Source of the DNA: Octopus sinensis
Lineage: Eukaryota
Direction: 5' to 3'
NCBI RefSeq assembly: GCF_006345805.1
Contig: NC_043009.1
Location: 7,936,001 to 8,000,000, forward strand
DNA: 64,000 bases
Positions 1,184-47,588 of the stretch are shown one piece after another (position 1 is the first letter of the stretch; every line of letters begins with the position of its first letter). Made by a program: the position numbers and the translations under genes. The notes below the pieces were generated by a model. That model was not told where the DNA came from and made no database searches. It saw only the letters and a list, made by a program, of their open reading frames with translations.

Positions 1184-2478
1184 ATATGTACTGGGTGCTG
1201 TTTATCTTTTTTTCTTTTTTTTTTGTGTCACCAGACTAGTGAGATTGACAAATAAATTGCAAGGCAGAAAAAGAATGGAAAAAGAAAAAAAGCTTCTGCT
1301 ACTCAATTGGGATGGGTGGAGAGTATTTGAGGAAGGAGAGAGATATGCCAACAAATGTTGAAAGGCTAAAGTATGATAGAGGGATAAACACGGGTATCTT
1401 ACTATGGGCATCCAGTTGATCAATCAACTGAATAACCTTCATTCAGTTTTGCATGCGAAGCTACTCAGTTTCACACAGAGTTGGAGTCTGGGCAGTTTGC
1501 CTGCTGGCCAGCTCCATGCCAGCATGGAAAGTGGACGTTAAATGATGATGATGATGTGTACCCTTGATATAGTTTCTCTAGTAGAATCAGTGTGGCACTG
1601 TGTGACTAGGCCTGACCATTGAATTACAGATGCAATCTGTCCTGATGGGCTTTTTTACACAGTTTTATTCACAAGGCTTTGATCAACTCATGGCTTTGAT
1701 AAAAAACATTTGCCCGATATGTGATGCAGTGTGACTGAACCTACAACTTCATGGTTGTGAAACAGACTTTTTAACCATCCAACCATGACTATGTTCTCTG
1801 CCTGCCTCTTTCTCTCTTTCTCTTATGTATATATATATATATATTCCTTCTTTCTGTCAGCCCCTTCACTCTTACTTCATTCATTCCACTCTTCGTTCTT
1901 TCGTTCCCCCTCTCTCGCATTTCCTGGCCTTCTCTTCATGCTCACCTTCCCTCCTCTTTCACTTCACTCTGTCCCTTTCATTTTTTTCTTGCCCCCTCCT
2001 TAATTCTTCTAACCCTCTACCTCTACTTCTCTCTCTTCTCTCCCCACCTGACTGGTGTTCGCCCAAGCCTGACCTTTCTTTCTTAGTTCAACTACCATCC
2101 ATGCAACATCTATATTCCTCCCTGTGTCTGTCAAATCTTATATCCCTGCCGTAAAGCTTCTACACAAGCTTGCTTAATTTAATTCGTCCTTAGTCGAAAG
2201 TCACCTGTTGTTAATGTCCTGTTTTTTTGCATTTGTGTACTATTTTTCCATTTGTTTTTCATCCTTGTTTACATATACATTCGCTGCTTTCTTCCAAGGA
2301 ATCTAGTGCTCTTAGCTTAGTTTTTCCTTGGAATGGGCTAGATTAGAGCAATCTCGAGTATAACCGGCTGAAATTGCAAAGATAATCTGGAACTCAACTG
2401 AAGAAAGAAACTCTGAATGACCCGTCCTTGTTTTCTTTGTATCATCTGTCTGGATGTTTTTCGTTCTTGTCCCATTTT

Positions 2479-2518
<40 letters not shown>

Positions 2519-4133
2519 TGCATAATGCTTATAAATACTTATACTTGCTGACCAAAGCTTTGTAATTGAATTTAGTAGGCAGAAGTTACCGCTGTATGTG
2601 TACACAGGTGTGTAAGTGCTTGTACCTCCTAACAGATGATGATTTGCATGGTGACAAGGAATTAGAAATTTTCTATTCCTATGTGTCTGCAAATAAAATA
2701 GTTAAAATAGTTAAAATAGTCTGCAAATAGTTAAAACTAGCTTTTTAATTTCTCTCACATTAGCATTGTTAGTTGCAGGTTTGCTACTTTCCTACTGATA
2801 ATCAACATTTCAATGCATTTTCTTTACTATGAGTGATAAATGAGCATCTGGGCAACCTGAGAAGAACAAGTAATATCCTCAGGGATAAATTATTCACCAT
2901 TTTATCAGCTTCAAGCTAATGTTTATGTCTTTTGCTGATATGCATTGGTTAAAAGAGTCAGACACATATACATGTATGATGGAATATGCATGTGTAAATA
3001 CGGTCATATGTTGGAATTCAGCACTGTTTGTACCTAATAAATTCCACTCAAAGAATTAATGAACCAAAGGCTACAGGACAAAACATTTGTTTGTGGTACC
3101 ATATGCTGTGGGTCAATCCAAGGAATATGTAATTTTGAAGGGAACCTGTTAGCCACGCAGCTATTCCTGCACTCACGTTAATTAATAACGAATATACAAA
3201 ATAATTATTGTTTTGTATTGACCAAACTGCATAACAGTCCAGGAACACACTGAACATAATGAATTCAATTCATATAACACCCTGTAAAAACAAATTAACT
3301 ACACGCAAACTGTTACATGAACCAAATGCATCCTGCCTATAAAATAGACGAACACCATAACAAAAACCCTCATCAAACAGAACAGGATATGCATTATACC
3401 CAATTATGAAATGCACATTAATAATATATTACAAAAACATAAAAAAAAGCCCCTCTTCATTAGCAACGAACCACAAGGCTGCGAGCACTGAATAAACTTT
3501 AAATGGCTAATGTAATTTACAAATTTATATGAAAATTTGAAAATTAAAAATTTCATTTCTCTGTTACATTGAATATTATCAAAGAACCAGTGCAGCTCAT
3601 ATTACAAAACAAAAGTTGTATATCCCACTAGAAATGACGGCCACATTTCTTTTATCATACGATGCTGTATTAACCCTTTAGCATTCAAATTACTCAGTCA
3701 AATGTAATGCTAATTCATTCATGTTGCTTTGAAATAATCATGTATTACCTCATAGCTTTGGAATTTCAATGATGTAGTTGTTTACTTTTAGAACAATATT
3801 GAGACGCTTGACCTGGCTGGTTTTAACATAAAACTGGTAGAATATTCGACCAGGTATGGCCAGTTTGGATGCCAAAGGGTTAAAAAAAAAAATGGAGTAT
3901 ATATATTGGACAATGTATTTCTGAATATACAAAATGATATGACAATCCTGGTTAGAAAATTTTTCATCATAAGTTTGCTCAGTCAAAGCTAAGTAGCTAA
4001 AAGAAAATACTTTCTTAAGCCCTTTGCTCCTTATGACTCTTCTCCACTGTTTTTTTAAAATCTGGACCATTGTTTCTGCTTCTCTTCCTTTCTCAGGTCT
4101 TGGTTTCAAATTGTCTTTCTTTTTTTTTTCATT

Positions 4134-4478
4134 CTTTTATTTGTTTCAGTCATTTGACTGTAGCCATACTTCAGCACTGCCTTAAAGGGTTTTAGTTGAA
4201 CAAATCGATCCCAGGACTTGTTCTTTGTATGCCTAGTAATTATTCTATCGGTCTCTTTTGACAAACCAAGTTAGGAGGGCATAAACACACCAACATCGGT
4301 TGTCAAGCAATGGTGGGGGGAACAAACACAGACACACACATAAATGTATACATTTATATATGATAGGCTTCTTTCAGTTTCTGTCTACCACATCCACTCA
4401 CAAAGCTTAGGTCAGCCTGAACCCAGAACCATGTGGTTGGGAAGCAAGCTTCTTACCACACAGCCATGTCTGTACCTA
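4134..4478 (-). mobile_element. CORE-type tRNA SINE (octopus-like family), internally deleted
   Basis: The reverse complement starts with a GGCTGTGTGGTAAGAAGCTTGC head and ends CAAATGACTGAAACAAATAAAAGA; same family as 38488-38866. Confidence 0.75.
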
Positions 4479-4769
4479 CTATCATGGATGTTTTTATAAC
4501 TTGCCTTTTTTTTAGGTAGGGGTGTTCGCCCTACACAAACCCATTTTTATCTCTAGGAAGAGTTGGTCCATAGTAGTCTGGCCTCTTTTCTTTGACTTGT
4601 CTAACATGGGAAATCCTACCAGGAGCTTGTACTAAACTGGCATGGCTTTGAGGGTCATTGAAGTGCACAAGCTGCTATGCTGTAACAAGGACTGGACCTT
4701 TTGGTGGAAACAAAAACACAGTTGTCAGGTTTTTTTTATAGAATTCCTCAGCATATGGATGATTAAACT

Positions 4770-5095
4770 GGGACTCTGTTAGTTACGATGACGAGTGTTC
4801 CAGTTGATCCAATCAATGGAACAAGCTGCTTATGAAATTAGTGTGCATGTAGCTGAGCGCTCCACAGATACGCATACCCGTAACACAGTTCTCAGGGAGA
4901 TACAGTGTGATACAAACTGTGGCAAGGCTGGCCCTTTGAATTACAAGTACAGCTCATTTTTGCCAGTTGGGTGGACTGGAACAATGTAAAATAAAGTGTC
5001 TTGCCCAAGGATACAACCATGCCACCAGAAATCAAACTCAAAACCTTACAATTGTGTGCTGAATACCCTAACCACTAAGTCACACACCCACACAT
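4770..5095 (-). mobile_element. tRNA-head SINE (same family as 53071-53381)
   Basis: Minus-strand head GACTTAGTGGTTAGGG...GAGTTTGATTTC followed by CCTTGGGCAAGACACTTTA; body aligns by eye with 53071-53381. Confidence 0.7.
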
Positions 5096-6464
5096 GGATA
5101 ATTAGAAGTTGTCTAAATAGCACAATTATAATATAAAATTCGACATATAATTAGCGGACTCTAATACCAGGCACCAATATTTTCTTGTTGCTAAAAGAAA
5201 CCTGACAGCAATATTTAGAAATGTATTTTAATGCATAGCAAATAGACTTAACCTGTTACATGGTTTAATTTCATTACTTGACCCTGGACACATTAGGTGC
5301 CAGGTATTTGGAAGCATTTGGGTCAGGTCTGAAAATATGACTTATTCCCTTCTTCCTCTGAGAAGGGTCATGGGGTGAGGGTGGAGGCAGAGCATGGATG
5401 ATGCCTATCCTCTTCTGATGAAGCAAAACAGGAAAAGAGTAAAAGGTAAGAAATCAGTGGAACTGTGCTTGACCCGTAACCCAGAAATCTGTAGATTGGA
5501 ACTACCCTCTGCTAAGAAACAACAACAATAGCCTTTTATTCCATGTGAGATAACCAAAATCCCCAACACCTTTCCCACTGCCTTCTGCTGCTTGATCCCT
5601 TCAGTTCCTCTTCCATTTCCCAATAATGGAGAAACAGGGATAAAAGGCAAAGACCCTCCTTGACATTTTATAACTTTTTTTTTTCTTAGGAGTTAGCATG
5701 ACCTAATGACTAAAAAATTTGGCTCATAATGAAAAGATTTCAGGTTTGAGTCTTCCACTCCATTGTGTGCTATCTTGATTAAGTGTCTTTTTATCAGAGA
5801 TTTGAATTGACCCAGCCCACTGAACAGATTGTATTTAATAATCTAAAAGTTCAGCCTCATAGGGATTCTGCTTGAGAACTACATTAAGGGTAGGTGTGTC
5901 TGTAGAATGTTCAGTTACTTAAATGGTAATTCAAACAATTGCCTGAAATATTAGTGTCATCATCATTGTCCTTTTAACATTGACTGTTCCATGCTTGTGT
6001 AGGTTGGATGGAGTTTTATTGAGGCAGATTTTCTACTCCCAGATGCCTTCCCAGTCTCTAACCCATACCTGTTTCCATGCAAGGTAATTTTTCCCTATGG
6101 CCAGACACATTTTTACACATTATCAGAAATGAATGACACACATAATGATCATATGATTGAAATTTACAGACAAACAAAAGACAAAGACAGGTATATGAAC
6201 AACAAGCAGGTGTATTAGTTTGACGCTTGGGAAAGTGAGAATGTCTTTTACATTTCGAGTCTATGCTCTTCAACAGAAAGGAATATGAGGAAATAAACAG
6301 AGTGAGAATAAAAAACTTGTGGATTTAGCAATCAAGAATGGTGACCATATGATGCGAAGACAAGGAGACAAGCATATGCATTCAAACATACATAAGTGTG
6401 TGTGTGTATGTAATGCATAAACAGCCTGAAAGACTGCTTTAAGATACATGAAGTAATTTATGTT

Positions 6465-6677
6465 CTTTTCTACTCTAGGCACAAGGCCCAAAAGTTTTGG
6501 GGAAGGGGCCAGTCGAATAGATCGATCCCATTACACAAATGGTACTTAATTTATTGAGCCAAAAGGATGAAAGGCAAAGTCGACCTCGGCGGAATTTGAA
6601 CTCAGAACATAAAGACAGACGAAATACCACTATGCATTTTAGCTGGCGTGCTAATGATTCTGCCAGCTCACCGTCTT
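6465..6677 (-). mobile_element. tRNA-derived SINE with Meta/Deu-like central domain
   Basis: Reverse complement GAGCTGGCAGAATCATTAGC...GAGTTCAAATTCCGCCGAGGTCGACTTTGCCTTTCATCC...ATAAATTAAGTACC; many copies in the window. Confidence 0.75.
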
Positions 6678-8571
6678 ACATGGAGTAATTTATAAATATA
6701 CCTGAAGTATTATAAAAGCATGAAACTATTAGTAGCTCTTTCATTTGTGTATCTCAATTGATATTTGTCTCTCACTGAATGGCGTACTTTTTTTTTTTTA
6801 TTCTACCTCTATTGGATTTGTAAACTACACACACGATGTACTTCTTTCAGTTTTTGCCTACAAAAACCACCCACAGTAGAAGACACTTGCGTAAGGCATC
6901 CTGCCGTAAGGGCTGAACCAGAAACCTTGTGGTTGGGAAGCAAAATATTTAGCCACTCAGCCACACCTGCATCTATGGGTTTGTCTTTTAACAATATGGC
7001 AATGATTCGAGTGTCTGTTCATTTTAGTGAATAGTATTATACTCTGAACATAGATGTTTTTCATTCTCACTAAACTCTCTGCTGAAAGTCTTTGCACAAA
7101 GAAGCATTTTTATTACATTTGTAAGATATTGTCTCATATTAATATATATTCTTATACATGATTTCCTTTTTCTTTTTAATCATGTTTCTTCTAATTAAAG
7201 AGAAACACAAAATGTAAAGACATTGGTTATGGTTCTATTTATAGGGGCGGTGGTGGTTACACAGCAAATATTAATGCAATTATTTACATACAACTTGGTT
7301 ATTATTAAATTAGTTATATTATTTATACACTGATTCAGGAAAGTTATCTCTTTTGGGGGGAAGATTTTTTTTGTTGTTGTGGCTTTTCTTTTTGTTCTGT
7401 GTTTCACATGCAAGTATCATATGTTTGGGTATTATATACAGAGATATTTTTATTCATAAGTATTTATGTGTGTATATACTCATATGCAAGCTGTCTGAAT
7501 AAGATCAGTATGAGCGTTGTGTGTTTATGTATTGAAATATACCAACTGATACCACAAAAGTGTATATTTGTGTGTTTGTGTATGTACAATAAGAACCGTG
7601 TCTTGTGAATTAACCAACTTATTTCAAATGTCAGCATCTTTTCTATACCTGTGTGTTTACAATGTGTGTCTGTGTGTCTACATATATCTATCTATAGATT
7701 TGTACATATAATTATCAAATATCTCATACACCAAACGTGTGTATGTATTTATATGAAACGTGTGTGTATGTGTGGTTGGATTTGTGTGTAGACATAATTA
7801 ATTCCTGTCTAAAATCAGTTAATCTGGCAAAAGCCATGGAAATGACATAAAGAGTTGAGATAAATAAAAAGAAAGTATTAGATATTCAATCAGTATTTAA
7901 GAAACATCGGTAATTACTAATGACATTTATTAATTATCAATATATTGCAGCCTGTCTACTAATTCTCTTGAACGACAGAATTCTAAGAACCAAATGAAAT
8001 CAAAACCAGAAAAATGTGCCAAGAAAAGATGACCTTACAAGTTTCTTCCCCATTAAACTCATTTGACACTAAATCTCTCTTGGATATGAATTACAAAATA
8101 AAAGACAAATTTTACAAGGAGAAAGCAAACCCATTACTATACAATAACAGGGAGAACTTTTAATTACATTATGCAGGGGTGATCTATTGAGTAGCAAAGG
8201 GACAAACTAGCAGCTATATATTGAAAGGGCAAGAATATGCCTATTGTATCTTGGATGTTGGACTGATCTATGACATCTTCGATTTTGGAATGGTCTGATA
8301 TTCTGGAGGTTGGACTAGTCCATGACATCTTTGATGTTGGACTAGTTCATGACAGCCAGGATATTGGTAATACTGGATGTTGAATTAATCTGTGGCATGT
8401 GGAGGTGCATGGCATAGTAGTTAGGGTGTTGGACTCATGATTTTAAGATTGTGGTTTCAATTTCTGGACTGGTTGATATGATGTGTTCTTGAGCAAAACA
8501 CTTCATTTCACGTTGTTCCATTCCACTCAGCTTGTAAAAATGAGAAATCCTGCAATGGACCTGTGATTCTT

Positions 8572-18154: not shown

Positions 18155-18179
18155 TATATATATATATATATATATATAT

Positions 18180-20363
18180 TCCCATCTCTTCCCATCTCTT
18201 CTCATCTTTCAGCCATTGGCGGTCTTTTTTCCTCCTCTCACCATTACGATTCTATAATTTAAATTCCCAATTCAATTTCAACTCCCGTTCGATGTCCGCA
18301 GCAAGTTCTTAAAAATTTATCTTACTATTTTATTCGTTGTTACTACGTTTCTTCATACATTGTTACGAAAATTTAACCTTTTAGGCTACTTTCAAGCCTT
18401 CGCCATAACTTGATTTATCGTTCTATCTCTCTCTCTACAAAATTTAACCTTAGGCCAGGCTACCTCAAGCCGTAATCCTATCTCTTCCCATCTCTTCCCA
18501 TCTCTTCTCATCTTTCAGCCATTGGCGGTCTTTTTTCCTCCTCTCACCATTACGATTCTATAATTTAAATTCCCAATTCAATTTCAACTCCCGTTCGATG
18601 TCCGCAGCAAGTTCTTAAAATTTATCTTACTATTTTATTCGTTGTTACTACGTTTCTTCATACATTGTTACGAAAATTTAACCTTTTAGGCTACTTTCAA
18701 GCCTTCGCCATAACTTGATTTATCGTTCTATCTCTCTCTCTACAAAATTTAACCTTAGGCCAGGCTACCTCAAGCCGTAATCCTATCTCTTCCCATCTCT
18801 TCCCATCTCTTCTCATCTTTCAGCCATTGGCGGTCTTTTTTCCTCCTCTCACCATTACGATTCTATAATTTAAATTCCCAATTCAATTTCAACTCCCGTT
18901 CGATGTCCGCAGCAAGTTCTTAAAAATTATCTTACTATTTTATTCGTTGTTACTACGTTTCTTCATACATTGTTACGAAAATTTAACCTTTTAGGCTACT
19001 TTCAAGCCTTCGCCATAACTTGATTTATCGTTCTATCTCTCTCTCTACAAAATTTAACCTTAGGCCAGGCTACCTCAAGCCGTAATCCTATCTCTTCCCA
19101 TCTCTTCCCATCTCTTCTCATCTTTCAGCCATTGGCGGTCTTTTTTCCTCCTCTCACCATTACGATTCTATAATTTAAATTCCCAATTCAATTTCAACTC
19201 CCGTTCGATGTCCGCAGCAAGTTCTTAAAAATTTATCTTACTATTTTATTCGTTGTTACTACGTTTCTTCATACATTGTTACGAAAATTTAACCTTTTAG
19301 GCTACTTTCAAGCCTTCGCCATAACTTGATTTATCGTTCTATCTCTCTCTCTACAAAATTTAACCTTAGGCCAGGCTACCTCAAGCCGTAATCCTATCTC
19401 TTCCCATCTCTTCCCATCTCTTCTCATCTTTCAGCCATTGGCGGTCTTTTTTCCTCCTCTCACCATTACGATTCTATAATTTAAATTCCCAATTCAATTT
19501 CAACTCCCGTTCGATGTCCGCAGCAAGTTCTTAAAAATTTATCTTACTATTTTATTCGTTGTTACTACGTTTCTTCATACATTGTTACGAAAATTTAACC
19601 TTTTAGGCTACTTTCAAGCCTTCGCCATAACTTGATTTATCGTTCTATCTCTCTCTCTACAAAATTTAACCTTAGGCCAGGCTACCTCAAGCCGTAATCC
19701 TATCTCTTCCCATCTCTTCCCATCTCTTCTCATCTTTCAGCCATTGGCGGTCTTTTTTCCTCCTCTCACCATTACGATTCTATAATTTAAATTCCCAATT
19801 CAATTTCAACTCCCGTTCGATGTCCGCAGCAAGTTCTTAAAAATTTATCTTACTATTTTATTCGTTGTTACTACGTTTCTTCATACATTGTTACGAAAAT
19901 TTAACCTTTTAGGCTACTTTCAAGCCTTCGCCATAACTTGATTTATCGTTCTATCTCTCTCTCTACAAAATTTAACCTTAGGCCAGGCTACCTCAAGCCG
20001 TAATCCTATCTCTTCCCATCTCTTCCCATCTCTTCTCATCTTTCAGCCATTGGCGGTCTTTTTTCCTCCTCTCACCATTACGATTCTATAATTTAAATTC
20101 CCAATTCAATTTCAACTCCCGTTCGATGTCCGCAGCAAGTTCTTAAAAATTTATCTTACTATTTTATTCGTTGTTACTACGTTTCTTCATACATTGTTAC
20201 GAAAATTTAACCTTTTAGGCTACTTTCAAGCCTTCGCCATAACTTGATTTATCGTTCTATCTCTCTCTCTACAAAATTTAACCTTAGGCCAGGCTACCTC
20301 AAGCCGTAATCCTATCTCTTCCCATCTCTTCCCATCTCTTCTCATCTTTCAGCCATTGGCGGT
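18180..20363. repeat. Tandem array of 306-bp units, ~7.1 copies
   Basis: AGCCATTGGC recurs at 18211, 18517, 18822, 19127, 19433, 19739, 20045 and 20351. The only differences seen are single-base homopolymer losses. Confidence 0.99.
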
Positions 20364-20699
20364 GCGCCCGCCCCCCCACCCCCACCAATACCGATGAACA
20401 CTGTTCTCACCCCCACCACCAATACCGGTGAACACTGTTCCTCACCTCCCACCACCAATACCAGTATACCCTGTCCTCACCATCTACACCGGATACGCCT
20501 TACTCATCTACACCGGGTACGCCCTACTCCCTCCCCCTCCCCCCACTACCCCTTCTCCTCATATGCTTTCACTGTGAAAAGACAAGCTGCTAGCGCCATA
20601 GCTCATCAACTGCCCACCGATCTTATGCTTCCTCCTGACACTGCCTCATTCCGACTATCCCCTTTAGCACCCTCCCGCCTCGTAATATCCTATGTTTTT

Positions 20700-21055
20700 T
20701 ATTTCTTAGGAACCTACACCAACCCTTCCTGCCATCGTTCCTCCTTACCCCAACCTTCCCCACTGGTTGCTCCCCTATATTACCCGCCTCAACTGGACCC
20801 CCCCTCTCCCCAACTCAACTCTCGAATATCTGTATTCTTTCCTCTACCTAATAACGTTACTCAGTGACGATAACGAATGTCTTTATTTCTTAGGAACCTA
20901 CACCAACCCTTCCTGCCATCGTTCCTCCTTACCCCAACCTTCCCCACTGGTTGCCCTCCTATATTACCCGCCTCAACTGGACCTCCCCCTCCCCAACTCA
21001 ACTCTAGAATATCTGTATTTCTTTCCTCTACCTAATTACGTTACTCAGTGATGAT
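20700..21055. repeat. Two tandem copies of a 184-bp CT-rich unit
   Basis: ATTTCTTAGGAACCTACACC at 20701 and 20885, with a few substitutions between copies. Confidence 0.9.
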
Positions 21056-21174
21056 AAATGCTGTGACTACAAAGACCCGGGCTGCTTTCTGCAGCAATTC
21101 CACATACCCCCTACTCATTCTAAGTACCCCGGATCCCCAAAGTACCCTGGATCCCCAAAGTACCCCGGACCTCG

Positions 21175-21850: not shown

Positions 21851-21890
<40 letters not shown>

Positions 21891-23095
21891 GTATGTGTAT
21901 GTGTATATGTATATGTATGTGTATATGTATGTGTATATATATGTGTATATATATGTGTATATATATGTGTATATATATATGTATATATGTATGTATATAT
22001 GTATGTATATATGTATGTATATATGTATGTATATGTGTATGTATATGTGTATGTATATGTGTATGTATATGTGTATGTATATGTGTATGTATATGTGTAT
22101 GTATATGTGTATGTATATGTGTATGTATATGTGTATGTATATGTGTATGTATATGTGTATGTATATGTGTATGTATATGTGTATGTATATGTGTATGTAT
22201 ATGTGTATGTATATGTGTATGTATATGTGTATGTATATGTGTATGTATATGTGTATGTATGTATATGTATGTATGTATATGTATGTATGTATATGTATGT
22301 ATGTATATGTATGTATATATGTATGTATATATATATGTGTATATATATGTGTATATATGTGTATATATATGTGTATATATATGTGTATATATATGTGTAT
22401 ATATGTGTGTATATATGTGTGTATATATGTGTGTATATATGTGTATATATGTGTATATATGTGTATATATGTGTGTATATGTGTGTATATGTGTGTATAT
22501 GTGTGTATATGTGTGTATATGTATGTATATGTATATGTATATGTATATATATGTATGTATATGTATGTATATGTATGTATATGTATGTATATGTATGTGT
22601 ATGTATGTGTATGTATGTGTATGTATATGTATATGTATGTATATGTATGTGTATGTATATGTATGTATATGTATGTGTATGTATATGTATGTGTATGTAT
22701 ATGTATGTGTATATGTATGTATATGTATATGTATGTATATGTATGTATATGTACATATATGTATATGTATATATATGTATATGTATATATATGTATATGT
22801 ATATATATGTATGTATATATATGTATATGTATATATATGTATATGTATATATATGTATATATATGTATATGTATGTATATGTATATGTATATATATGTAT
22901 ATGTATGTATATGTATATATGTATATGTATATATATGTATATATATGTATATGTATATATATGTATATGTATATATATGTATATATATGTATGTATATGT
23001 ATATGTATATATATGTATGTATATGTATATATATATATATATGTATATGTATATATATGTATATGTATATATATATATATGTATATATATATATG

Positions 23096-23126
<31 letters not shown>

Positions 23127-23175
23127 GTATATATATGTATATATGTATATATATGTATATATGTATATATATATA
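21851..23175. repeat. Compound TA/TG microsatellite, ~1.3 kb
   Basis: (TA)n core with blocks of TATG, TATATG and a long near-perfect 12-mer GTGTATGTATAT run at ~22035-22260. Confidence 0.98.
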
Positions 23176-23315
23176 CTAAGCAATAAAGGGTTTAGCAACG
23201 AATTGCCTTACCACATACCGAATTTAGAAATAGCAGTCAAAGAGTTATAGCTATTTCTTCTACTAAAAAGGGAGATCTCAGTAAAAACAGCAATTGGAAG
23301 GCAGACACAAACAGG

Positions 23316-23350
<35 letters not shown>

Positions 23351-23638
23351 GTATATATGTATATATATATATATATGTATATATGTATATATATATATAT
23401 ATGTATATATGTATATATATATATATGTATATATATATATGTATATATATATATGTATATATATATATGTATATATATATATGTATATATATATATGTAT
23501 ATATATATATGTATATATATATATGTATATATATATATGTATATATATATATGTATATATATATATGTGTATATATATATGTGTATATATATATGTGTAT
23601 ATATATATGTGTATATATATGTGTTATATATATGTATA
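23316..23638. repeat. TA-derived microsatellite flanking the LINE 3' end
   Basis: (TA)nTG variant repeats. Confidence 0.97.
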
Positions 23639-23726
23639 TAACTTAGAATAACTTAGAAAGGTTTTTGGCCAGTATTGGCCCAGGCCATGTCTAACTTAAT
23701 AGCACCACCTGGCGAAGTCTTTCAGT

Positions 23727-25500
23727 TCAGGATTTGGGCACCAAGGCCCATTCGAGCAGAGAGTTATTGTTTGCGGAGACATATCCGGGTGTGGGTGGTT
23801 TGTCCGGTACTGTTTGAAGGAATTTGTCCAAAGACTTCTTGAATTTTGTGTGGTCAGTTTCTTTTTTGACGTGTCCTGGTGTAATGTTGAAGAGAGCGGG
23901 TCCAATTGAGGTGAAATAGTTGTGCCGTATTGTCGTTATGTGATGCGATTTAGATTTTTGTTGTGGACGGATGGCACGTGGTCCAAGCCTTGGATGCGTT
24001 TTGAAGGTGATGCCAACATCATTCGGACAGTGCTGATGGAATATTTTCCACATCATACAGATAATGTAGCGTTCACGGCGTCGTTGGAGTGAATACAATT
24101 TCAGCTTCTCTAGTCTACCCCAGTAGTCAAGGTCTGACATGCCATCTATCTTTTTTGTGATTGACCTTTGGGGAGCTTCAATTCTCATAATATTTTGTTT
24201 TGTGTAGGGAGACCACAGTGGACAGCAGTATTCAAGGTGGGGTCGGGCAAAAGTGGAGAAGAGAAGGATAATAGCGTGGGAATCTCTCGACTGGAAGGTT
24301 CTGAGAATCCAGGAACACATTCTGCGGGCCATGTCAACTTTGCTGCTTATATGTGTAGCCCAGCTTATGTTGTTGTCCACTGTTACTCCCAGGTCTCTGA
24401 TGTTGTTGGATGCCATGAGAATTTCTCCAGAAGGAAGAGAGTATGGGAGTTTCAGAGCGTCCTCCCTTCCAAAGTGGATCAGTTCGAATTTGTCTTCATT
24501 TAGCAACATGTTATTCTTTTCCGCCCATTGGACAACAGCCAGTAGGTCTGACTGAAGGTTTATTCGGTCATCCACGCCATTGATGACCTTCTGGAGCTTG
24601 GAATCATCAGCGAAGGTTCTGATGTTGCTGTGTTTGATGGTGTCAGTAATATCATTTATGTAGATGATGAAGAGAAGTGGGCCCAACACAGTGCCTTGTG
24701 GGACACCACTGCTGACTTTGGCTGGGCTGGATTTGACTCCTTCGACTACAACATGTTGGGTTCTGTTAGAGAGGAAGCACTTGATCCATTGCAGCAGCTT
24801 ATTGGACAGCTTTCTCAGAAGGATCTTATGATCAACCCTGTCAAAGGCCTTGCTGAAATCAAGGTAGATGACATCAGTGTTGGAACCCTCTCCCAAGGCT
24901 CTCAAAATGTCATCAAAATGATGCAGTAGCTGCGTCAGGCAATCTCTCCCATTACGGAATCCATGCTGGTTGGGGTTCAGCATATTATGACTCTCAAGGA
25001 AGTGAGTCATACGCGATCTCAGCACCCTCTCAAATACCTTGATGATATGAGAGGTGAGTGAGATTGGACGGTAATTCACGGCAAGCGATTTGTTTCCTTT
25101 TTTGAAAACTGGGACAACAGACTGGGATAGAAGGTCTTCTGGTATATATCCAGCATCCAATGAGTTCCGCCACAGATTGGCTAGAGGGGGTGCAAGTTGG
25201 TTTTGACACATCTTCAAGACACAAGCAGGGAACCTATCGGGACCTACTGCTGAATTATGCTTCATTTCCTTTATTGCTGCTAAGACATCAGGAGCGCCAA
25301 ATGTTATGTCCGATAAAGTGTATTGGGGAGTAACATCACTGATACAGCCCAGATCAGTCATATCAGGATTGCTGAAAACAGAGCAATATTGTTTCTGCAA
25401 TATTTCTCCCATGGTTTTGGCATTGTCTTGAAGAGTACCATTTTCATCAATCAGAGGGCCAACAGTAGAACCAGTGACTCTGTGTTTTTTGCAAATGAAA
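23727..25500 (-). CDS. LINE reverse transcriptase and C-terminal region
   Basis: Motifs YRPISLTS, QHGFR, YLDFSKAFD, GVPQGTVLGP, FADD and YSLQRRRERY. The frame is open upstream of the annotated ATG (25412) to an A-run frameshift at ~25487. Confidence 0.97.
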
Positions 25501-25698
25501 AGAACACTTTGGGATTGAGTTTGATCTTCTCAATGGCCCAGGCCTCTTCAGCTCTTCGCTGACTATTGATGATAGACATCATGTTGTTTTGGAGTTTATG
25601 TTTTTTAATCTCTAGCGACGAGATGGCAGTCAGGTTGGTGTGTTGCTGTTGACAGTATTTCAGCATGTTGATCTTTTTGTTGATTCTTTTAATTTTCC

Positions 25699-26670
25699 TT
25701 ATGAGAGATTTTCTATTTCTAGGGATTCGACACTTAGATTTGTTGCAGATCTTAATGGGGTGTGTCTTGCACATATGTTCGTGATGGTGTCTACAAGTGA
25801 CTGCCAGGACTTTTTGATGTTAGTGGGTGTGTATGTGTGCGTGAAGGACCAATCGACTTGTGCAAGATCATTATTGATCGCTTCCCAGTTTGCATTGTGG
25901 AAATCCATAGTGTCAAATGGATGAGCAGGAGGGATGACATTTGTTTTGCATTTTGGCCAGTGAAATCTCAGATCACAGAGAACCATGTCATGGTCGGAGA
26001 GTAAGGTTTTCTCCACTGCAATATTGTGGATAGTATCAGTGTGATTGCTGAAAATTAAGTCTAAGACGTTTTTGTGACATCTCGTTGGTTCGAGTACCAG
26101 TTGGGACAAGAAGAAGTCATCCATGAAGTCAAGAAGCGATTCCACTGCCTCCCTGTCAGGGGTTGAGAGAGAAGAACCTGGCGGCAGACTGTTTGTAGAC
26201 CAGTCAACCCCGGGAAGGTTGAAATCTCCCATCATTAAAATGTTGTCAGGTTGACACTGCTGAATGAAACACTTTATGCTGTTGAGGCATTCCTTGAAGC
26301 ATGGTAGGGGCGTTTGGGGTGGTCTGTAGAGCCCAACTACTGTTAAGTTGTTGGTTTGACTGAATACAGCGACTGCTTCGCAGTATCCATTCGAAAATAT
26401 GTTCATGGCTTCTGTTGAGAATGAATCATGGACATAAATGGCAGTCCCACCCTTTCTTCTGCCAACACGATCAGCACGAATGGTTTTGAAATTTTTAACT
26501 TTCACCTCGGCTTCCAAGTGGAGGTCACTAAGATGGGTTTCAGTGAGGACGAAAAAAGGGATGTGGTTTGGATGGGCCTCGACCCAATCCTCCAGGAATC
26601 TTATCTTCCATTTTGTGTATTGGTGGAAGGGCTGATGCCTTGGGCATTAAGCAGAAATGTTGAGGCGAGA
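25699..26670 (-). CDS. LINE apurinic-type endonuclease domain (one frameshift at ~26610)
   Basis: LLNAQG...[+A]KWKIRFLEDW...LTETHL, RADR-GG-IYV, VGLYRPP, MGDFN, VLDLIFSN, SDH. Confidence 0.93.
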
Positions 26671-26921
26671 GTGATGGTGGTTTTAATTGTTTTGGTGATT
26701 TGTTTATTTGATTGCTTTTTAATGGCATGTGTAGTGGGGTAATAGTGGTGGATGGCGGGGGTGATAGCTCGGATGTTTTTTTCCAGTTCTTTTGCTAGAT
26801 TCATTATAGCTAAAAAGAGGAAGAAGAGGTGGTTTTCCTGTCTAGGGAACCGCAGGTGACTGTGGCCGCGGCTATTTTTATGTGAGTGGTTATCTTTAAA
26901 TGTCCGACGAGTCCCCGGGAG

Positions 26922-27137
26922 ATGGGTAAAGGGGCAATCCCTGTGCAAGCACAATCTGTCTCGCTGGGAATAGCGGCAGATTTGGGGATTCCTTGTTTGA
27001 GATATTGGTGGTTGTGGTGATGTTGTATTATGGTGGTTGCTGTTGTAGTTTGTGGGGATAGAGCGTTTTGTTCCAGGTAAATGGATGAATTTGCAGTCTC
27101 TATCAGTGCACAGTCTATGGCGAAGAGAATATCGGCA
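26922..27137 (-). CDS. Two CCCH-type zinc fingers in the LINE N-terminal region
   Basis: CRYSLRHRLCTDRDCKFIH (27137-27081) and CRYSQRDRLCLHRDCPFTH (26978-26922), both C-x8-C-x4-C-x3-H and both followed by LPGT(K/R)R. Confidence 0.8.
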
Positions 27138-27638
27138 AATGATGGGGTTTCGAGTGGGTGTGTAGGTGCGTGTGTGTGTGTGTGCTGTGAAAGGTGTAGA
27201 TGATAGTTTGTTGAAGTTTTGGCGACCTTTGTGACCTGTAGGAGGTAAATTCCTTGAGATAGCATTAGTAGTAGTAGCTGTAGTAGTAGTATAGTATAGT
27301 AAGAGATGTTGACAGTGGTAATGATTGAGGAGTTCGATTCCAAGACAAAGATGTTTGTCGATATATAGTGGGAGTAGTACTAGTAGTAGTAAGCAGAGGA
27401 GATGGTGTTGACAATGATGATGATTGAGCTGCTGGGGCAGTGAAAGGAAGGGGTGGTGCTTCCTGCTGTGTGACCCTGATGACTGGGGGGTCAATCGTTT
27501 CATTTAGCAAATCGGCCATTGTAGATGAATCAAGGAGTGGTTCATCCTGTTGTTGTTGTTGAGGTTGTTGTTGTTGTTGTTGCGCCGGTGATGCGTTCGA
27601 AGAGAAAACACATCTCAGTTTATCGAAGTGTTTATTTA

Positions 27639-27906
27639 TTATTTAAAAGCAACTTCGAATTGTTTTAATTTATTTTGTATCTGCTGTTCAGATCGAGTTT
27701 GCAAATGGTGAACTGTTCGTTTGGCAATTTCGTTCAGACACGAAGCACCTATGCTCTCTGTTTCGGTAAGGCCATGCCATGTGTTGATAAGAACGTCGAC
27801 TTCATTATCAGACCAGTTTTTTGTTGGATTTTTGGTGGCTAGCCATTCTGGTTGATATGTTTTATTAAATTTATTTTGTTCGTTCGTTTTGTTGATTACT
27901 TTTAAT
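27639..27906 (-). CDS. Myb/SANT-like (trihelix) domain at the LINE N-terminus, absent from the ORF track
   Basis: Translation from 27815: WSDNEVDVLINTWHGLTETESIGASCLNEIAKRTVHHLQTRSEQQIQNKLKQFEVAFK, matching the W-x3-E-x3-L-x3-W ... R-S-x2-Q-x3-K-x-K pattern. One extra A at 27642-44 joins it to the polyQ frame. Confidence 0.7.
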
Positions 27907-28113
27907 TATTATTATTTTTTTTTTTTTTAAGGAGAAGTATGTAGAATTGATTGTACAGAATGTTTGTTGTAATACTGAGAAGTTTGTATTTGAATTATGA
28001 GCTTGTAGTTATTTTATCTTTCTTTTCTTTTCTTTTTTTTTTTTTTCCTCTTTTTCTAATTTTTAATGTGTGGGTGATCCTTTAGTTATCAGAAGGGTTT
28101 GAAATATTTGAGA

Positions 28114-28121
28114 ATATATAT

Positions 28122-28154
<33 letters not shown>

Positions 28155-29538
28155 GTGTGTATATATATATATATGTGGTATATATATGTGTGTATATATA
28201 TGTGTGTATATATATGTGTATATATATATGTGTATATATATATATGTAATATATATATGTATATATATATATAGTATATATATATGTATATATATATGTA
28301 TATATATATGTTATATATATATTATATCTATATGTATAGTATGTATATGTATATATATATGTATATATATATATGTGTATAATATATATGTTGTGTTATA
28401 TATTGTATATATATATGTGTATATATATATGTGTATATATATATGTATGTATTATGTATATGGTATATGTATATGTGTATAGTATATGTATGTTATATAT
28501 ATATGTGTAGTATATATGTGTATAATATAATTTATATGTATATGTATATGTAAATGGATAGTATATGTATATGTATATATGTATATGTATATATGTATAT
28601 GTATATATGTATATGTATATATGTATATGTGTATATGTTATATGTATATGTATATATGTAATAGTGTATAGTAATGTGTATATGTATATGTGTATATGTA
28701 TATGTGTATATGTATATGTGTTAATGTATATGTATATATGTATATGTGTATATGTATATGTGTATATGTATATGTGTATATGTATATGTGTATATGTTAT
28801 ATGTGTATATGTATATGTGTATATGTATATGTGTATATGTATATGTGTTAATGTATATGTGATATATATATGTGTATATATATATGTGTATATATATATA
28901 TGTTATATATATATGTGTTATATATATGTGTATATATAGTGTGTATATATATGTGTATATATTATGTATATATATATGTATATATATATGTGTATATATT
29001 GTGTATATATATTATATATGTATATATATATATGTATATATATGTATGTATATATATATGTATATATATGTATGTATATATTATATGATATATAGTATAT
29101 ATATAGTATGTATATATATATATGTATATATATATATGTATATATATATATGTATATATATATATTTATATATATATATATGTATATATTATATATATGT
29201 ATATATATATATATATGTAAATATATATATAATATATATATATATATGTATGTATATGTATGTATATGTATATGGTATGTATATGTATGTATATGTTAAT
29301 TATGTATATGTATATATATGTATATGTATATATATGTATATAATATTATATGTATATATATTAATGTATATATTATATATATATATGTATATATGTATAT
29401 ATATATATATGTATATATTATATAAGATATATATATGTATATATGTATATGTTGTATATGTATAAATGTGTATATGTATATGTGTATATATGTATATGTG
29501 TAATATGTGTATGTATATATGTGTATATGTATATATAT
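28114..29538. repeat. Compound TA-rich microsatellite, ~1.4 kb, flanking the LINE 5' end
   Basis: Degenerate (TA)n/TATG tract. Confidence 0.97.
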
Positions 29539-31050: not shown

Positions 31051-32597
31051 CACCATTCTTGGTGGACTTGGGAAGGTTACAGTTACAACCCCTTAATTTT
31101 AATTGAATTATTAAAAAAAACAACAAAACAAAACTTTACCATGTTTACCCCTGTTTTAGAATAGATAGACCATGTTACTGCATAGCAAAAGGGATGGCTA
31201 GAAGGGCTGGTTATAGGAAGTGCATCTAAGTGTATAACTATCTCAACAAACAAGTTCAACTCATGCCAGCATGGAAAAGCAGGCATAACAGAATGACATG
31301 AGACAGCAGTGATGCTGACAATGACATGCTTTGGATATTTGTTGGGAGTTGTTTGCATAACATGGAAGGGGTACATTTTGTCAATTGAATAGCATAAACA
31401 CCAGTAATATAATGGAATAAAATGATAAATCAATAATAAATGCATCATCATCACCATCATCGTCATTTTAATGTCCACTTTTCCATGCTTGCATAGGTTA
31501 GGGTTTGATACAGATTTTATGTGGCCGGATGCCCTTCTTGAACCAAATCTCACCTATTTCCAAGCAAGGTAGTATTTTCCTGTGACAAGATATGTTTTTG
31601 CAGAATATTGGAAATGAACAATCCCTCTTGTATAACAGCAACAATCATTTTAGAACTCTCACATGATGTGAAAACAAGGAGATATAAACATACTCACACA
31701 CATGTATGTATGTATGGTAGGCTTCTTTCAGTTTCTGTCTATCAAATCCACTCAGAAGGCTGAGTTATTTAAGTTATAATCTTCAGCATTAATGTTTCTT
31801 ATCTAGTCCAATACTGCTACAGTTAAGACATATAACTATCCTAGTCTCTGTTCAATAGCTGTAGATAACTACCATGGGGAGGCACAGCTGCTGTTAGAGA
31901 TAGTCAACCCGAAAGAAAACTTTACATGGATCAAAATTTATCGTAGCTTGATTTATTACTAACCATTTCTACAATATCGTGGATGAGATGGCTGATATCT
32001 TGGATTAGTCATTTAGAAATCAAAACAAGTCTGTGTTGAGCTGCAACAAGAGTTCTTTATCTTGGTGAGCAATTTGGTCAGGATTTTTCATTCAGCAGAG
32101 TTGTGAGCTTGAAATTAACAATGATGTCCTACTTGTTTGTGTCAGTCTTCAGCTACCGTACCGTACCGTCAGTTCCGTCATTAATACAACGAGGAATACA
32201 CTTGGTCTGCTGCTAGTTATGTGAGACATACTTTCAGCGAAATCTGTCTCGAATATTCTCATTAATTTGTTGGAGTGAGATGGAAACTATAAGCTGTAAG
32301 TATTGTTATCAACAATCAAATCAAACACGGTACTCATGGTGATGATGCTTAGTTGATTAATTTAACCAGTACTGGCTGTGGATTTCAGAACAAATATTAT
32401 AGCATAAATATGATATACTCTGTTCTTACACACTGTATATGTTTGTGTGTATGAGTATATATTTGTGTGTATATGTATATTTGTATGTGTATATGTGTGT
32501 GTGCATCTATTATATATCTATGTATAAAATATATATATATGCATTTCTTTGTGTATATATGTGTATGTGCATCTCTCTATATATGCATGTATGCATT

Positions 32598-32638
<41 letters not shown>

Positions 32639-32767
32639 ATGTGCATCTATCTATCTATCTATATATATATATAGCATGTGTGCATTTCTTAGTATGCATC
32701 TATCTGTATGCATGTGTGCTTGAATGTACATATATATATAATGCATGTGTGCATTTGTGTGTGTTTG

Positions 32768-32806
<39 letters not shown>

Positions 32807-33554
32807 ATACATACATACACACACACACACACATTCCATGATATTTCACTATTTTTATTTTATATAAGTGTGATAATGTTAAACATCAAAAGTCTTAATT
32901 TCTGCTTGACCTTTCAGTAATGAATGGCATCCTTAACAAAGTACGTATATTTATATGGTCACCTGACCTGCTTAAAATAGCAGTTAGTTAGATCTCCCTC
33001 AAATCTATTCCTTCTATCTGGAAAAAAATAAAATAGAATAAAATAAAAGCTCCATTGGATAATATAATTCTTATATAAAAAATACAGGATGGTCATGGTT
33101 GGAATAACTGTGGTCTAGTCATTACTGCTACACTTAGTATCTCTGTCTTAAACATGAAGTTGTCTTTGAGTCTGTTCAATAGCTGTAGATAGGTACCATG
33201 AGAAGGTACAGCTGCTAGTTAATGTTAGTCAACCTTGCTTGATCAGGTTGACCTGTGGTTAAACAATAAGCAATTACCTCTGTTGCCATGTAAGGAGGGA
33301 CGAGATGGAAGTTGTGGTATTCATACTTTTCCAAAGGCATTAATGATGTAAAAGAAGCGAGGTGGTTTCACATAGAAACAGATAATACAGTGGAGACCAG
33401 GCACTGAGAGCAGTATTTGTTACCATGTAGCCATTGTCTTGCTCCACCATGTATGTCATATGTTACTGACATTAACAATAAAACCATACTAGATAATGCC
33501 ATAGCATTTTGTACTATGCTGAATTATCATATTATTGAATAAATAAACCATCAT

Positions 33555-46652: not shown

Positions 46653-47526
46653 TAAGGTGTGGTAAGTAAATTCTTGCTATTTTATAATTTTGTTACGTGC
46701 ATGGGCATTGTTTGCTTTTGATTTTGTCAACTACACAGTATAGTAGGGTTAGTTGGGAACTGTCTGGTAGAAAAACAGTACCATGACGCAATTCAGTCTG
46801 CCTTAAATTTGGAAATGACATGCTGGATTGCTTGGCATTCATGCTGGGAGCTGAAATACAAACAGATGGTGAACACACAGAACAACCATTGGCTTGCCAT
46901 GTCCCCAAAACATGTACTAAGAGTGATAAAAATCAAACATCCAGTCAACATCATGGTGTTTCGAGTGATTACTAGCGATGGTGACGTTCATCTTCCCATA
47001 TGGCTTTAGATTCAACATGGAGGCCTACGTCAAATGCCTGGAGGAGTTAGTGCTACTCTGGGTCAAGAGAGAGGCTGTTGGAAGACCCAATGTATGGCAA
47101 CAGGACTCTGCACCACACCACACAAACAGAGAAACCCAGTCATTTCTGTCAGACAATTTCTGTGACCACATCACCCCTAATGTCTGACCACCTAACTCAG
47201 ACTGCAACCCCCTTGATTATTATGTGTGGGGTGCAGTTGAGCAAGAGACCAACAAAACTCCTTGTTACAGCAAAGATGAACTGAAGGCAAGGATTATGGC
47301 AGCATTCACCAACTTAAACTAGGAGACTTTCCAGAAGAGTTGCAGGAGATTCTGAAGTCGTCTAGAGGCTGTGGTTGAAGCCAATGGTGATTTTATTGAA
47401 TTAATTTACTTTTTAATATTTCAAGATATTTTAATGTAATTTTGGTAAATATATCTGTTAAAATGAGATGTCAGTATTATATCATTTTTGCATAATTTAG
47501 ATGACAGTATATTCACTGCACCCTTA
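46653..47526 (+). mobile_element. Decayed Tc1/mariner-superfamily transposon, maT (DD37D)-like
   Basis: Fragments HPVNIMVF-VITSDGDV, WQQDSAPHHT and PPNS-DCNPLDYYVWG. Right terminus AATTTAGATGACAGTATATTCACTGCACCCT; left end uncertain. Confidence 0.8.
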
Positions 47527-47530
47527 TGTG

Positions 47531-47588
<58 letters not shown>

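Follow-up and report, generated by a model that had tools for sequence, protein, structure and literature searches.

The proteins encoded by open reading frame 1 (ORF1) are the least understood part of long interspersed nuclear elements (LINEs). They are modular, with RRM, CCHC, Tnp22, PHD or esterase domains, and in LINEs that carry an apurinic/apyrimidinic-type endonuclease (APE) target specificity is normally credited to the endonuclease. A survey of ORF1 in the Jockey/CR1/L2 superfamily lists RRM, CCHC, Tnp22, PHD, esterase and zf/lz types and no Myb or CCCH (PMC4120745), and neither domain figures in a survey of CR1-group elements from vertebrates published in 2026 (PMC13343379). Here we describe a LINE-like unit at positions 23641-28113 (minus strand) of a 64,000-nt stretch of Octopus sinensis DNA (contig NC_043009.1, 7,936,001 to 8,000,000; hereafter the window), whose ORF1 combines a predicted Myb/SANT-like domain with two CCCH fingers. 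The closest described systems are the PHD-type CR1/Crack LINEs (Type III of Khazina and Weichenrieder; CR1 subgroups 2, 4 and 6 of Metcalfe and Casane 2014, PMC4120745; the 2A-PHD elements of Odon et al. 2013, PMC3708506), which resemble the window element in their two-ORF arrangement with APE and reverse transcriptase (RT), 3′ hairpin, short tandem-repeat tail without poly(A) and small N-terminal reader or binding module in ORF1. The window element differs in that this module is Myb_DNA-bind_4-like rather than PHD, and in its CCCH fingers, which the surveys do not list. An initial annotation of this DNA had described the architecture as unfamiliar for a CR1-like element, in agreement with both surveys, and a full-text literature search for Myb or CCCH together with LINE ORF1 (Repbase and Dfam lying outside the comparison) found no such architecture described.

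The unit was delimited by a three-frame reading from 28200 to 23500 and a check of the DNA. It probably represents an octopod LINE of the CR1-like APE type, preserved as a dead copy of roughly full length, in which the stretch flagged by the initial annotation is ORF1. Positions 26922-27846 of the minus strand encode the Myb/SANT-like domain, a polyglutamine (polyQ) tract, a Ser/Thr/Pro-rich linker and the two CCCH fingers, with APE and RT directly downstream. The Myb, polyQ, linker and finger pieces quoted in the annotation are all present on this strand. Its range (26922-27906) is exact at its end but not at its start, where the 5′ 60 nt (27847-27906) are untranslated leader. Pfam identifies Exo_endo_phos_2 (2.7e-14), Exo_endo_phos (3.9e-10) and RVT_1 (1.7e-29) in the window, APE followed by RT; together with the 3′ hairpin and short-repeat tail, these matches substantiate the annotated APE-RT LINE with CR1-type hallmarks.

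An important question is whether the N-terminus is part of the element. If the Myb segment were foreign to the element (flanking DNA that had been captured, an exon of the host or part of a Harbinger-type Myb gene lying beside this copy by chance), this could explain why tblastn of each piece detects no sister copy within the 64-kb window, why the N-terminal query has no match among 5.8 billion proteins and why frameshifts precede the fingers. We nevertheless regard such an origin as very improbable, because the same domain opens an intact ORF1 of Argonauta hians that continues into the fingers, because it precedes polyQ, finger and C-terminal segment in a further copy (L010) and because single-nucleotide corrections restore colinearity in the window.

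The APE-RT query found ORF2s of ~1000 aa from marine metagenomes at 35-45% identity, the closest named relative being that of A. hians (P0004; GAB1603590.1), with 56% identity over RT; the joined query aligns across 98-100% of intact relatives. At the Argonauta locus (L001) there is a near-intact sister element whose ORF1, complete at 407 aa, occupies 3944-5167 ahead of ORF2. This ORF1 starts with MTESGKINSRTWKDHEISTIINTWSELNEKGFTSL...GRSRSQIQSKVRLIIQHFKLIFPHINKLSKIL, passes through a Pro/Thr/Asn-rich linker and two C-x8-C-x4-C-x3-H fingers and ends in SPFLDLLKITQKLHTSLKKLLENPR; ORF2 is open from ~5080 to 8217 in a different frame and overlaps it. In tblastn, the Argonauta ORF1 matches the window at 6e-15 over the fingers and C-terminal segment, and the N-terminal domains of the two match by BLASTP at 2e-14. 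The Argonauta N-terminus is likewise homologous to that of another sister copy, P0045 (locus L010; E 2e-11, compared with 2e-14 for the window).

P0045 came from a HMMER search with the Myb piece alone over 1.84 billion representatives, in which the sole other match was a spurious repeat protein (P0044). The P0045 ORF has 157 aa (MMNNNTSHVYTKQNWSESEIDTLINGWFNL...NRSAKQIENKIKQIAKGYHLIRKHVGKLHLILSTTVEQQQQQS), with RNPIICRYSLRERICLQQDCTFTHLPGTRRT and SFLDMLNLVKEIQRSIL downstream in shifted frames, and the order in L010 is Myb, polyQ, CCCH finger and C-terminal segment. A profile search with the window and Argonauta ORF1s found only P0043 (locus L009), a decayed fragment with 70-75% DNA identity to the window that retains the linker, fingers, C-terminal segment and the start of APE, and a scan of JGI metagenomes with the ORF1 profile returned nothing. 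Because the Myb-like segment, linker, fingers and C-terminal segment are colinear in three independent lineages, the captured-flank reading is refuted by L001 and L010. The sister-copy check proposed in the initial annotation thus places the Myb segment within the family, at the same position in both loci.

The window ORF1 needs frame corrections because this copy is dead: no fewer than six frame changes, along with several stops, are spread over 4.5 kb. Its pieces share no single open frame, and three 1-nt indels are assumed: in an A-run at ~27816-27821, at 27642 and at ~27266-27268, the last ahead of the two fingers. A fourth shift at ~26613-26624 leads into APE. Translation starts at the ATG at 27846-27844 with MASHQKSNKK; NWSDNEVDVLINTW lies at 27777-27818 and RSEQQIQNKLKQFEVAFK at 27642-27695, both on the minus strand. 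Past the first slip the frame reads NWSDNEVDVLINTWHGLTETESIGASCLNEIAKRTVHHLQTRSEQQIQNKLKQFEVAFK, and past the second IINKHFDKLRCVFSSNASPAQQQQQQPQQQQQDEPLLDSSTMADLLNETIDPP..., the start of the Ser/Thr/Pro-rich tract. Each frame join is backed by sister copies, and the segment that follows 27642, IINKHFDKLRCVF, aligns with LIRKHVGKLHLIL in P0045 and LIFPHINKLSKIL in Argonauta. The leader of the window copy may be 5′-truncated relative to the ~760-nt leader of the Argonauta copy (L001 3186-3943). The element and its borders, read in the direction of the element, are made up as follows.

28114-29538, unstranded: impure (TA)n array with CA interruptions, 5′ of the element (Tandem Repeats Finder, TRF).
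27847-28113, minus strand: A-rich 5′ leader, ~270 nt (sequence reading).
27604-27846, minus strand: ORF1 start (ATG 27846) and Myb/SANT-like domain of the Myb_DNA-bind_4 type (Pfam PF13837, pairwise BLASTP).
27547-27582, minus strand: polyQ QQQQQQPQQQQQ, (CAA)n-like DNA, part of the variable linker (translation).
27138-27546, minus strand: low-complexity Ser/Thr/Pro-rich linker with the frameshift at ~27266-27268 (translation).
27081-27137, minus strand: CCCH finger 1, CRYSLRHRLCTDRDCKFIH, C-x8-C-x4-C-x3-H, then the motif LPGTKRS (translation and alignment).
26922-26978, minus strand: CCCH finger 2, CRYSQRDRLCLHRDCPFTH, C-x8-C-x4-C-x3-H, then the motif LPGTRRT (translation and alignment).
26763-26828, minus strand: conserved C-terminal segment of ORF1, LFFLFLAIMNLAKELEKNIRAI, with a helix-like amphipathic sequence pattern (alignment).
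25699-26657, minus strand: APE domain, from FLLNAQGIS (26631-26657) through FFVLTETHL, with the frameshift at ~26613-26624 (Pfam).
25413-25698, minus strand: interval between APE and RT, with two frame changes (three-frame translation).
23727-25412, minus strand: RT (FADD motif) and C-terminal domain, a 561-aa open frame (Pfam RVT_1).
23667-23711, minus strand: conserved element of the 3′ untranslated region (UTR), an 11-bp hairpin and a small GGCC-N6-GGCC hairpin (comparison with Argonauta, folding).
23641-23657, minus strand: 3′ tail, in which TCTAAGT occurs at 23651-23657 and again at 23641-23647, 10 nt apart (sequence).
21853-23640, unstranded: impure (TA)n array with CA interruptions, directly 3′ of the element (TRF).

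The N-terminal domain is best described by PF13837 (Myb_DNA-bind_4; curated gathering cut-off 27 bits), which is the best Pfam family for all three N-termini and aligns over profile positions 2-72 of 89. P0045 lies above the cut-off (31.7 bits, E 2e-7), and the frame-corrected window N-terminus reaches 26.0 bits (E 1.3e-5), the Myb-like stretch as such matching at E 5e-5 to 1.3e-5. The three N-termini are mutually only 32-43% identical, with W12, E16, I21, N22, W24, L27, R52, S53, Q56, I57 and K60 invariant. Among these residues, W-x11-W and R-S-x2-Q-I-x2-K sit where the profile aligns, and judging from the sequences they fit the W...W / R-S-x2-Q-x3-K layout usual in the PF13837 family. AlphaFold2 (AF2), given a two-sequence alignment, produces a shallow model (mean pLDDT 68.8) with helices at 14-24, 33-50 and 54-84, the third of which is long. 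The half of the domain that contains helix 3 is strongly basic (+4 to +7), the N-terminal half is acidic (-2.4 to -4), and the isoelectric point (pI) is 9.7-10.1 in two of the three domains. We consider it probable that the N-terminal domain has a Myb/SANT-like fold, and DNA binding by the predicted domain is plausible.

The same stretch could instead be a helical, coiled-coil-like oligomerization region with a chance resemblance to PF13837, as the two long helices of a single-sequence AF2 model and the GCN4-type coiled coils among the PDB profile matches (E 0.2-0.5) would suggest; the lack of a Foldseek match and the scores of two of the three sequences below the Pfam cut-off point the same way. 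This explanation seems improbable to us, in that three sequences so divergent all select PF13837 over one span, one of them above threshold, the two invariant motifs fall at profile-aligned positions and the alignment-based model has three helices. The Myb/SANT assignment of the initial annotation is therefore upheld at the level of profiles (31.7 bits for P0045; 26.0 against 27 for the window), but not by structure comparison.

Comparison with more distant relatives indicates what is specific to the octopod lineage. ORF1s of six such elements from marine metagenomes were compared: L002 (L003 and L004 are the same element), L005, L007, L011, L012 and L013. In all but L005, a PHD-like finger of the C4HC3 kind is followed by an acidic stretch and then by three CCCH fingers; the ORF1 of L005 is truncated at the 5′ end of its contig and consists of three fingers and the C-terminal segment only. 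The last finger of these proteins has the C-x8-C-x4-C-x3-H spacing followed by (L/V)-x-G-T-(K/R)-R, and an FL(D/E)xxL segment follows the fingers in every relative except L007. When five elements are aligned, the two octopod fingers pair with fingers 1 and 3 of the relatives, and a spacer devoid of Cys takes the place of the middle finger in octopods. The Myb-like module occupies the exact position of the PHD-like finger.

On these alignments, the octopod CCCH fingers and C-terminal segment are inherited from an older type of ORF1, in which the same C-terminal segment and three CCCH fingers were combined with a PHD-like finger. In the octopod lineage the PHD module was apparently exchanged for the Myb-like one and the middle finger lost. 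Since the fingers are common to the PHD-type relatives, the lineage-specific event is the PHD-to-Myb replacement together with the loss of one finger. It is this replacement that is new; the modular nature of LINE ORF1 proteins and the shuffling of their domains are known. The presence of three fingers in all six relatives also runs counter to the idea, put forward in the initial annotation, that CCCH fingers are unusual for this group of LINEs.

The PHD-like finger of the nearest relatives is accompanied in two of them by a 2A-like NPGP motif, which lies near the N-terminus of ORF1, ahead of the finger, in L011 (358-1968; ...GDGCVEANPGP) and L012 (301-2100; ...GCVEVRPGP). An earlier study reports that, with a single exception, 2A-like sequences are situated N-terminally in ORF2 (PMC3708506), so that a 2A-like motif in a CR1-like ORF1 would be unusual. 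As a lead only, the 2A-PHD ORF1s of the relatives match the reports for the CR1 and Crack clades in the same study.

The fingers themselves, described in the initial annotation as two C-x8-C-x4-C-x3-H motifs, are real and conserved, and their spacing fits the C-x7-8-C-x4-5-C-x3-H pattern of CCCH-type fingers. A composition-preserving shuffle of the window is expected to contain 0.08 matches to the pattern and seven are observed, so the pattern is beyond chance. Five of the seven lie in translations of TG/CA microsatellites; the other two are the ORF1 fingers, in one frame and 159 nt apart. The eight finger ligands and the G-T-x-R motif are invariant in all five aligned elements, and window finger 1 aligns with Argonauta finger 1 and with the first finger of the PHD-type relatives. 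A profile of the finger region gives weak matches in the PDB (overall E 0.002-0.1) to established RNA-binding CCCH proteins, namely Yth1 (E 0.0024), MBNL1 (0.0046), Nab2 and CPSF30.

The remainder of ORF1 is less uniform. S, T, P, N and Q make up 42% of the protein, the pI of which is ~10 overall. The linker sequence LLDSSTMADLLNETIDPP is conserved as LLNSSTFNDLLNETVNS in L009. At the polyQ site, P0045/L010 has a shorter QQQQQ and Argonauta has none, and the tract is a lineage-variable (CAA)n run inside the low-complexity linker. The polyQ noted in the initial annotation is thus present but is not a conserved module, and its candidacy as a functional domain was rejected on the Argonauta sequence. 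The C-terminal segment LFFLFLAIMNLAKELEKNIRAI aligns with SPFLDLLKITQKLHTSLKKLL in Argonauta, SFLDMLNLVKEIQRSIL in L010, FLDILKQIREIASEMK in L013 and FLEEALLALETRIM in L012, and is a possible oligomerization element. Pfam detects no RRM, CCHC, Transposase_22, PHD or esterase domain in the window or Argonauta ORF1. Within the scheme whose types I-IV are defined by RRM/CCHC, Tnp22, PHD (either alone or with RRM) and esterase, this ORF1 would belong to the unclassified Type V.

ORF1 lies directly upstream of APE-RT, as annotated, but in the best-preserved relative, Argonauta, it is a separate 407-aa frame that overlaps ORF2. We did not adopt a single ORF, with ORF1 as the N-terminus of APE-RT, as the state of the family, given the two overlapping ORFs of Argonauta and an in-frame stop in L009. 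The junction differs among the copies. In the window (26601-26660, minus strand) the CCCH frame enters the first APE motif with no stop; in L009 (~900-1000) an in-frame stop stands just ahead of this motif; and in Argonauta (L001 5080-5420) ORF2 overlaps ORF1 by ~90 nt in the other frame, with no ATG before codon M at 5416. The arrangement suggests that ORF2 would be translated by reinitiation, read-through or frameshifting.

The 3′ end is also conserved. A block of the 3′ UTR is identical at 33/35 nt (94%) between the window and L001 8236-8270, as against ~65% in the coding DNA of ORF2. Its consensus fold has an energy of -21.9 kcal/mol, with no covariation, none being possible with only two sequences. 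The motif is unique in the window, and Rfam at gathering threshold detects nothing over the window. A similar CAGGTGGT...CCATG block was seen in the 3′ UTR of L013. The elements terminate in short tandem units and lack poly(A): TCTAAGT twice in the window and ATCTAAGT three times in tandem in Argonauta, with other short tandem units in the relatives. These traits of the 3′ end, the FADD motif of RT and the PHD/2A-type ORF1s of the relatives fit the CR1/Crack group (PMC4120745, PMC3708506), and we take this clade as a lead.

The surroundings of the element raise the question of target choice. Impure (TA)n arrays flank the window copy on both sides, one of 1.4 kb (28114-29538) 5′ of it and one of 1.8 kb (21853-23640) 3′ of it, with identical CA interruptions on the same strand; on the element strand the commonest 6-mers of the 5′ array are ATATAT, TATATA, CATATA and TATACA, the same type as in the 3′ array. 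The Argonauta copy (L001) also has (TA)n arrays on either side, here with AAAT interruptions. Because the repeat type is equal on both sides of a copy and differs between the species, the arrays look like pre-existing targets rather than tails borne by the element, and the two flanking arrays of the window are taken to be halves of one target microsatellite. TA arrays constitute 5.3% of the window, and ~0.9% without the two flanking arrays. Some 90% of the TA-type array sequence of the window is found in these two blocks; smaller TA or TG/CA microsatellites occur at ~32440-32900 and 47526-47584. Both Myb-type copies with readable flanks (the window and L001) lie inside impure (TA)n, compared with none of the five PHD-type relatives with a 3′ flank (L005, L007, L011, L012 and L013), which adjoin unique sequence.

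The exchange of PHD for Myb may underlie the insertion of both flank-readable copies in (TA)n. As a tentative extension, which we think possible but do not favor strongly, an octopod lineage of the CR1 group became (TA)n-specific through the replacement of PHD by the Myb-like module, with the ORF1 protein rather than the ORF2 endonuclease picking the target. From the observed anatomy, conservation, domain replacement and array flanks we infer the binding activities and the causal link between Myb and target that such a mechanism would involve. An intact ORF1 protein of the family would be very basic (pI ~10), ~400 aa long and composed of four parts: (i) an N-terminal domain of three helices, Myb_DNA-bind_4 in type, the third of them strongly basic, (ii) a long, fast-evolving, low-complexity Q/S/T/P linker, (iii) two CCCH fingers and (iv) a short helix-like C-terminal segment. 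As is the case for other ORF1 proteins, the element's own RNA may be bound by the fingers together with their basic flanks; the C-terminal segment would multimerize the protein, and the linker could provide reach or condensate-like behavior. The Myb-like domain would then tether the ribonucleoprotein to DNA or chromatin at the integration site and favor TA-rich microsatellite arrays. This tether was probably chromatin-based (PHD) ancestrally and became DNA-based (Myb-like) in the octopod lineage. The ORF2 protein, finally, may recognize the conserved 3′ hairpin and prime on the short-repeat tail. That ORF1 may couple recognition of a DNA target with RNA binding, as proposed in the initial annotation, finds its support in the (TA)n flanks of two copies and in the basic third helix.

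It is also conceivable, although we judge it rather unlikely, that the N-terminal module still tethers but does so as an adaptor to chromatin or proteins, with SANT-like binding of histone tails in place of the PHD histone reader rather than sequence-specific recognition of DNA, and that insertion in (TA)n stems from the cleavage preference of APE or from pairing of the 3′ tail with TA-rich target DNA. The module does stand at the exact position of the PHD-like finger, the PHD fingers of LINE ORF1 proteins have been proposed to serve in general chromatin targeting (PMC4120745), the 3′ tail directly adjoins TA repeats and the N-terminal half of the domain is acidic. The basic third-helix half and the high pI of two of the three domains are more Myb-like than SANT-like, however, and the PHD-type relatives, which have a homologous ORF2 (APE-RT, 35-45% identical), lie in TA arrays in none of five cases.

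Several points weigh against our interpretation of the element as a CR1-like LINE whose Myb-bearing ORF1 directs it to (TA)n. Only three Myb-bearing copies were found, two of them with flanks, and the 2/2 versus 0/5 comparison (Fisher p ~0.05), though suggestive, comes from far too small a sample; even without Myb, the endonuclease or the 3′ tail could be drawn to TA-rich DNA. The window N-terminus falls 1 bit under the PF13837 cut-off, and the Argonauta domain alone scores 13.0 bits. Foldseek comparison of the shallow AF2 model with the PDB gives nothing better than E = 5, and PDB sequence searches with the Myb part find no match. All Pfam CCCH matches are sub-threshold (E 0.45-0.86 in the window, 0.002-0.05 in the relatives). 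Placement of the LINE in the CR1 clade, as against L2, Rex1 or Crack, is provisional. In addition, L010 (Logan SRR29346471, 1-4569) pairs its decayed Myb-polyQ-CCCH ORF1 (354 to ~1444) with a divergent ORF2: an intact 1093-aa APE-RT frame (1282-4563) with a YADD motif that comes directly after ORF1 with no visible gap and is only 26% identical to ORF2 of the window-element family. L010 may reflect nesting of a young insertion, a chimeric assembly or genuine recombination of the ORF1 cassette onto the ORF2 of a different LINE. The locus may show that this cassette is able to combine with a different lineage of ORF2.

Elsewhere in the window, a 306-bp tandem repeat at 18179-20363 (7.1 copies, C/T-rich on the plus strand, GC skew ~-0.47) has 99% identity among its copies, which points to very recent amplification. 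Shorter repeats are found at 20382-20481 (34 bp, 2.9 copies) and 20698-21057 (184 bp, two copies). A second, unrelated LINE at 59128-60825 (minus strand) has a 565-aa open RT frame with YADD and a Cys-rich CSICKKGVGRNSIRCTKCKLWTHKRCS motif; its RT is ~28% identical to that of the element studied here.

Other systems in which a transposable element encodes a Myb-type domain provide a useful comparison. R2-group elements (RLE-type) insert in rDNA and have a single ORF, which carries N-terminal C2H2 zinc-finger and Myb motifs and in which RT is followed by a restriction-like endonuclease. As may hold for the window element, a Myb-type domain at the N-terminus of a non-LTR (long terminal repeat) retrotransposon protein is associated with a defined repeated target, but here the domain is located in a separate ORF1 of an APE-type element, beside CCCH fingers. 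TRAS and SART (R1 clade), APE LINEs specific for telomeres, have a Myb-like region within ORF2, between APE and RT, and CCHC knuckles in ORF1. They share with the window element an APE-type organization and a Myb-like segment that may aid recognition of a simple-repeat target, and differ from it in that this segment is part of ORF2 rather than ORF1, in their CCHC ORF1 and in clade. The Myb-like accessory proteins of Harbinger/PIF elements (SANT/Myb/trihelix) are separate proteins, encoded by the transposable element, that recruit the catalytic protein to DNA. The encoding of a domain of (for the window element, predicted) Myb/SANT-trihelix type on a separate protein is common to both, although Harbinger/PIF is a DNA transposon system; among the 1.84 billion representatives only P0045 was related to our Myb-like domain, and no relative outside LINE copies was detected.

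If the tentative reading of ORF1-directed target choice is correct, the element would to our knowledge be the first LINE of the APE type whose ORF1 includes a domain dedicated to DNA binding. The ORF1 catalogue would gain two domain types, CCCH and Myb_DNA-bind_4, and sister lineages with PHD at the same position would make a natural experiment on whether the ORF1 protein can steer integration. Annotators of cephalopod genomes would also gain a marker for the family, which gene predictors and the protein databases searched overlook almost completely. The final comparison is with LINEs that target microsatellites: Waldo in (ACAY)n, Mino in (AC)n, Kibi in (TC)n, Koshi in (TTC)n and Dong in (TAA)n (PMC3812793). 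No (TA)n-targeting LINE is among those named there, and specificity is attributed to the endonuclease, with no DNA-binding domain of ORF1 invoked. Like these elements, the window and Argonauta copies, two in all, appear to have inserted into microsatellites that were already present, since each has one type of repeat on its two sides, and if the proposed targeting is true they would represent the first (TA)n-specific LINE to join that list.

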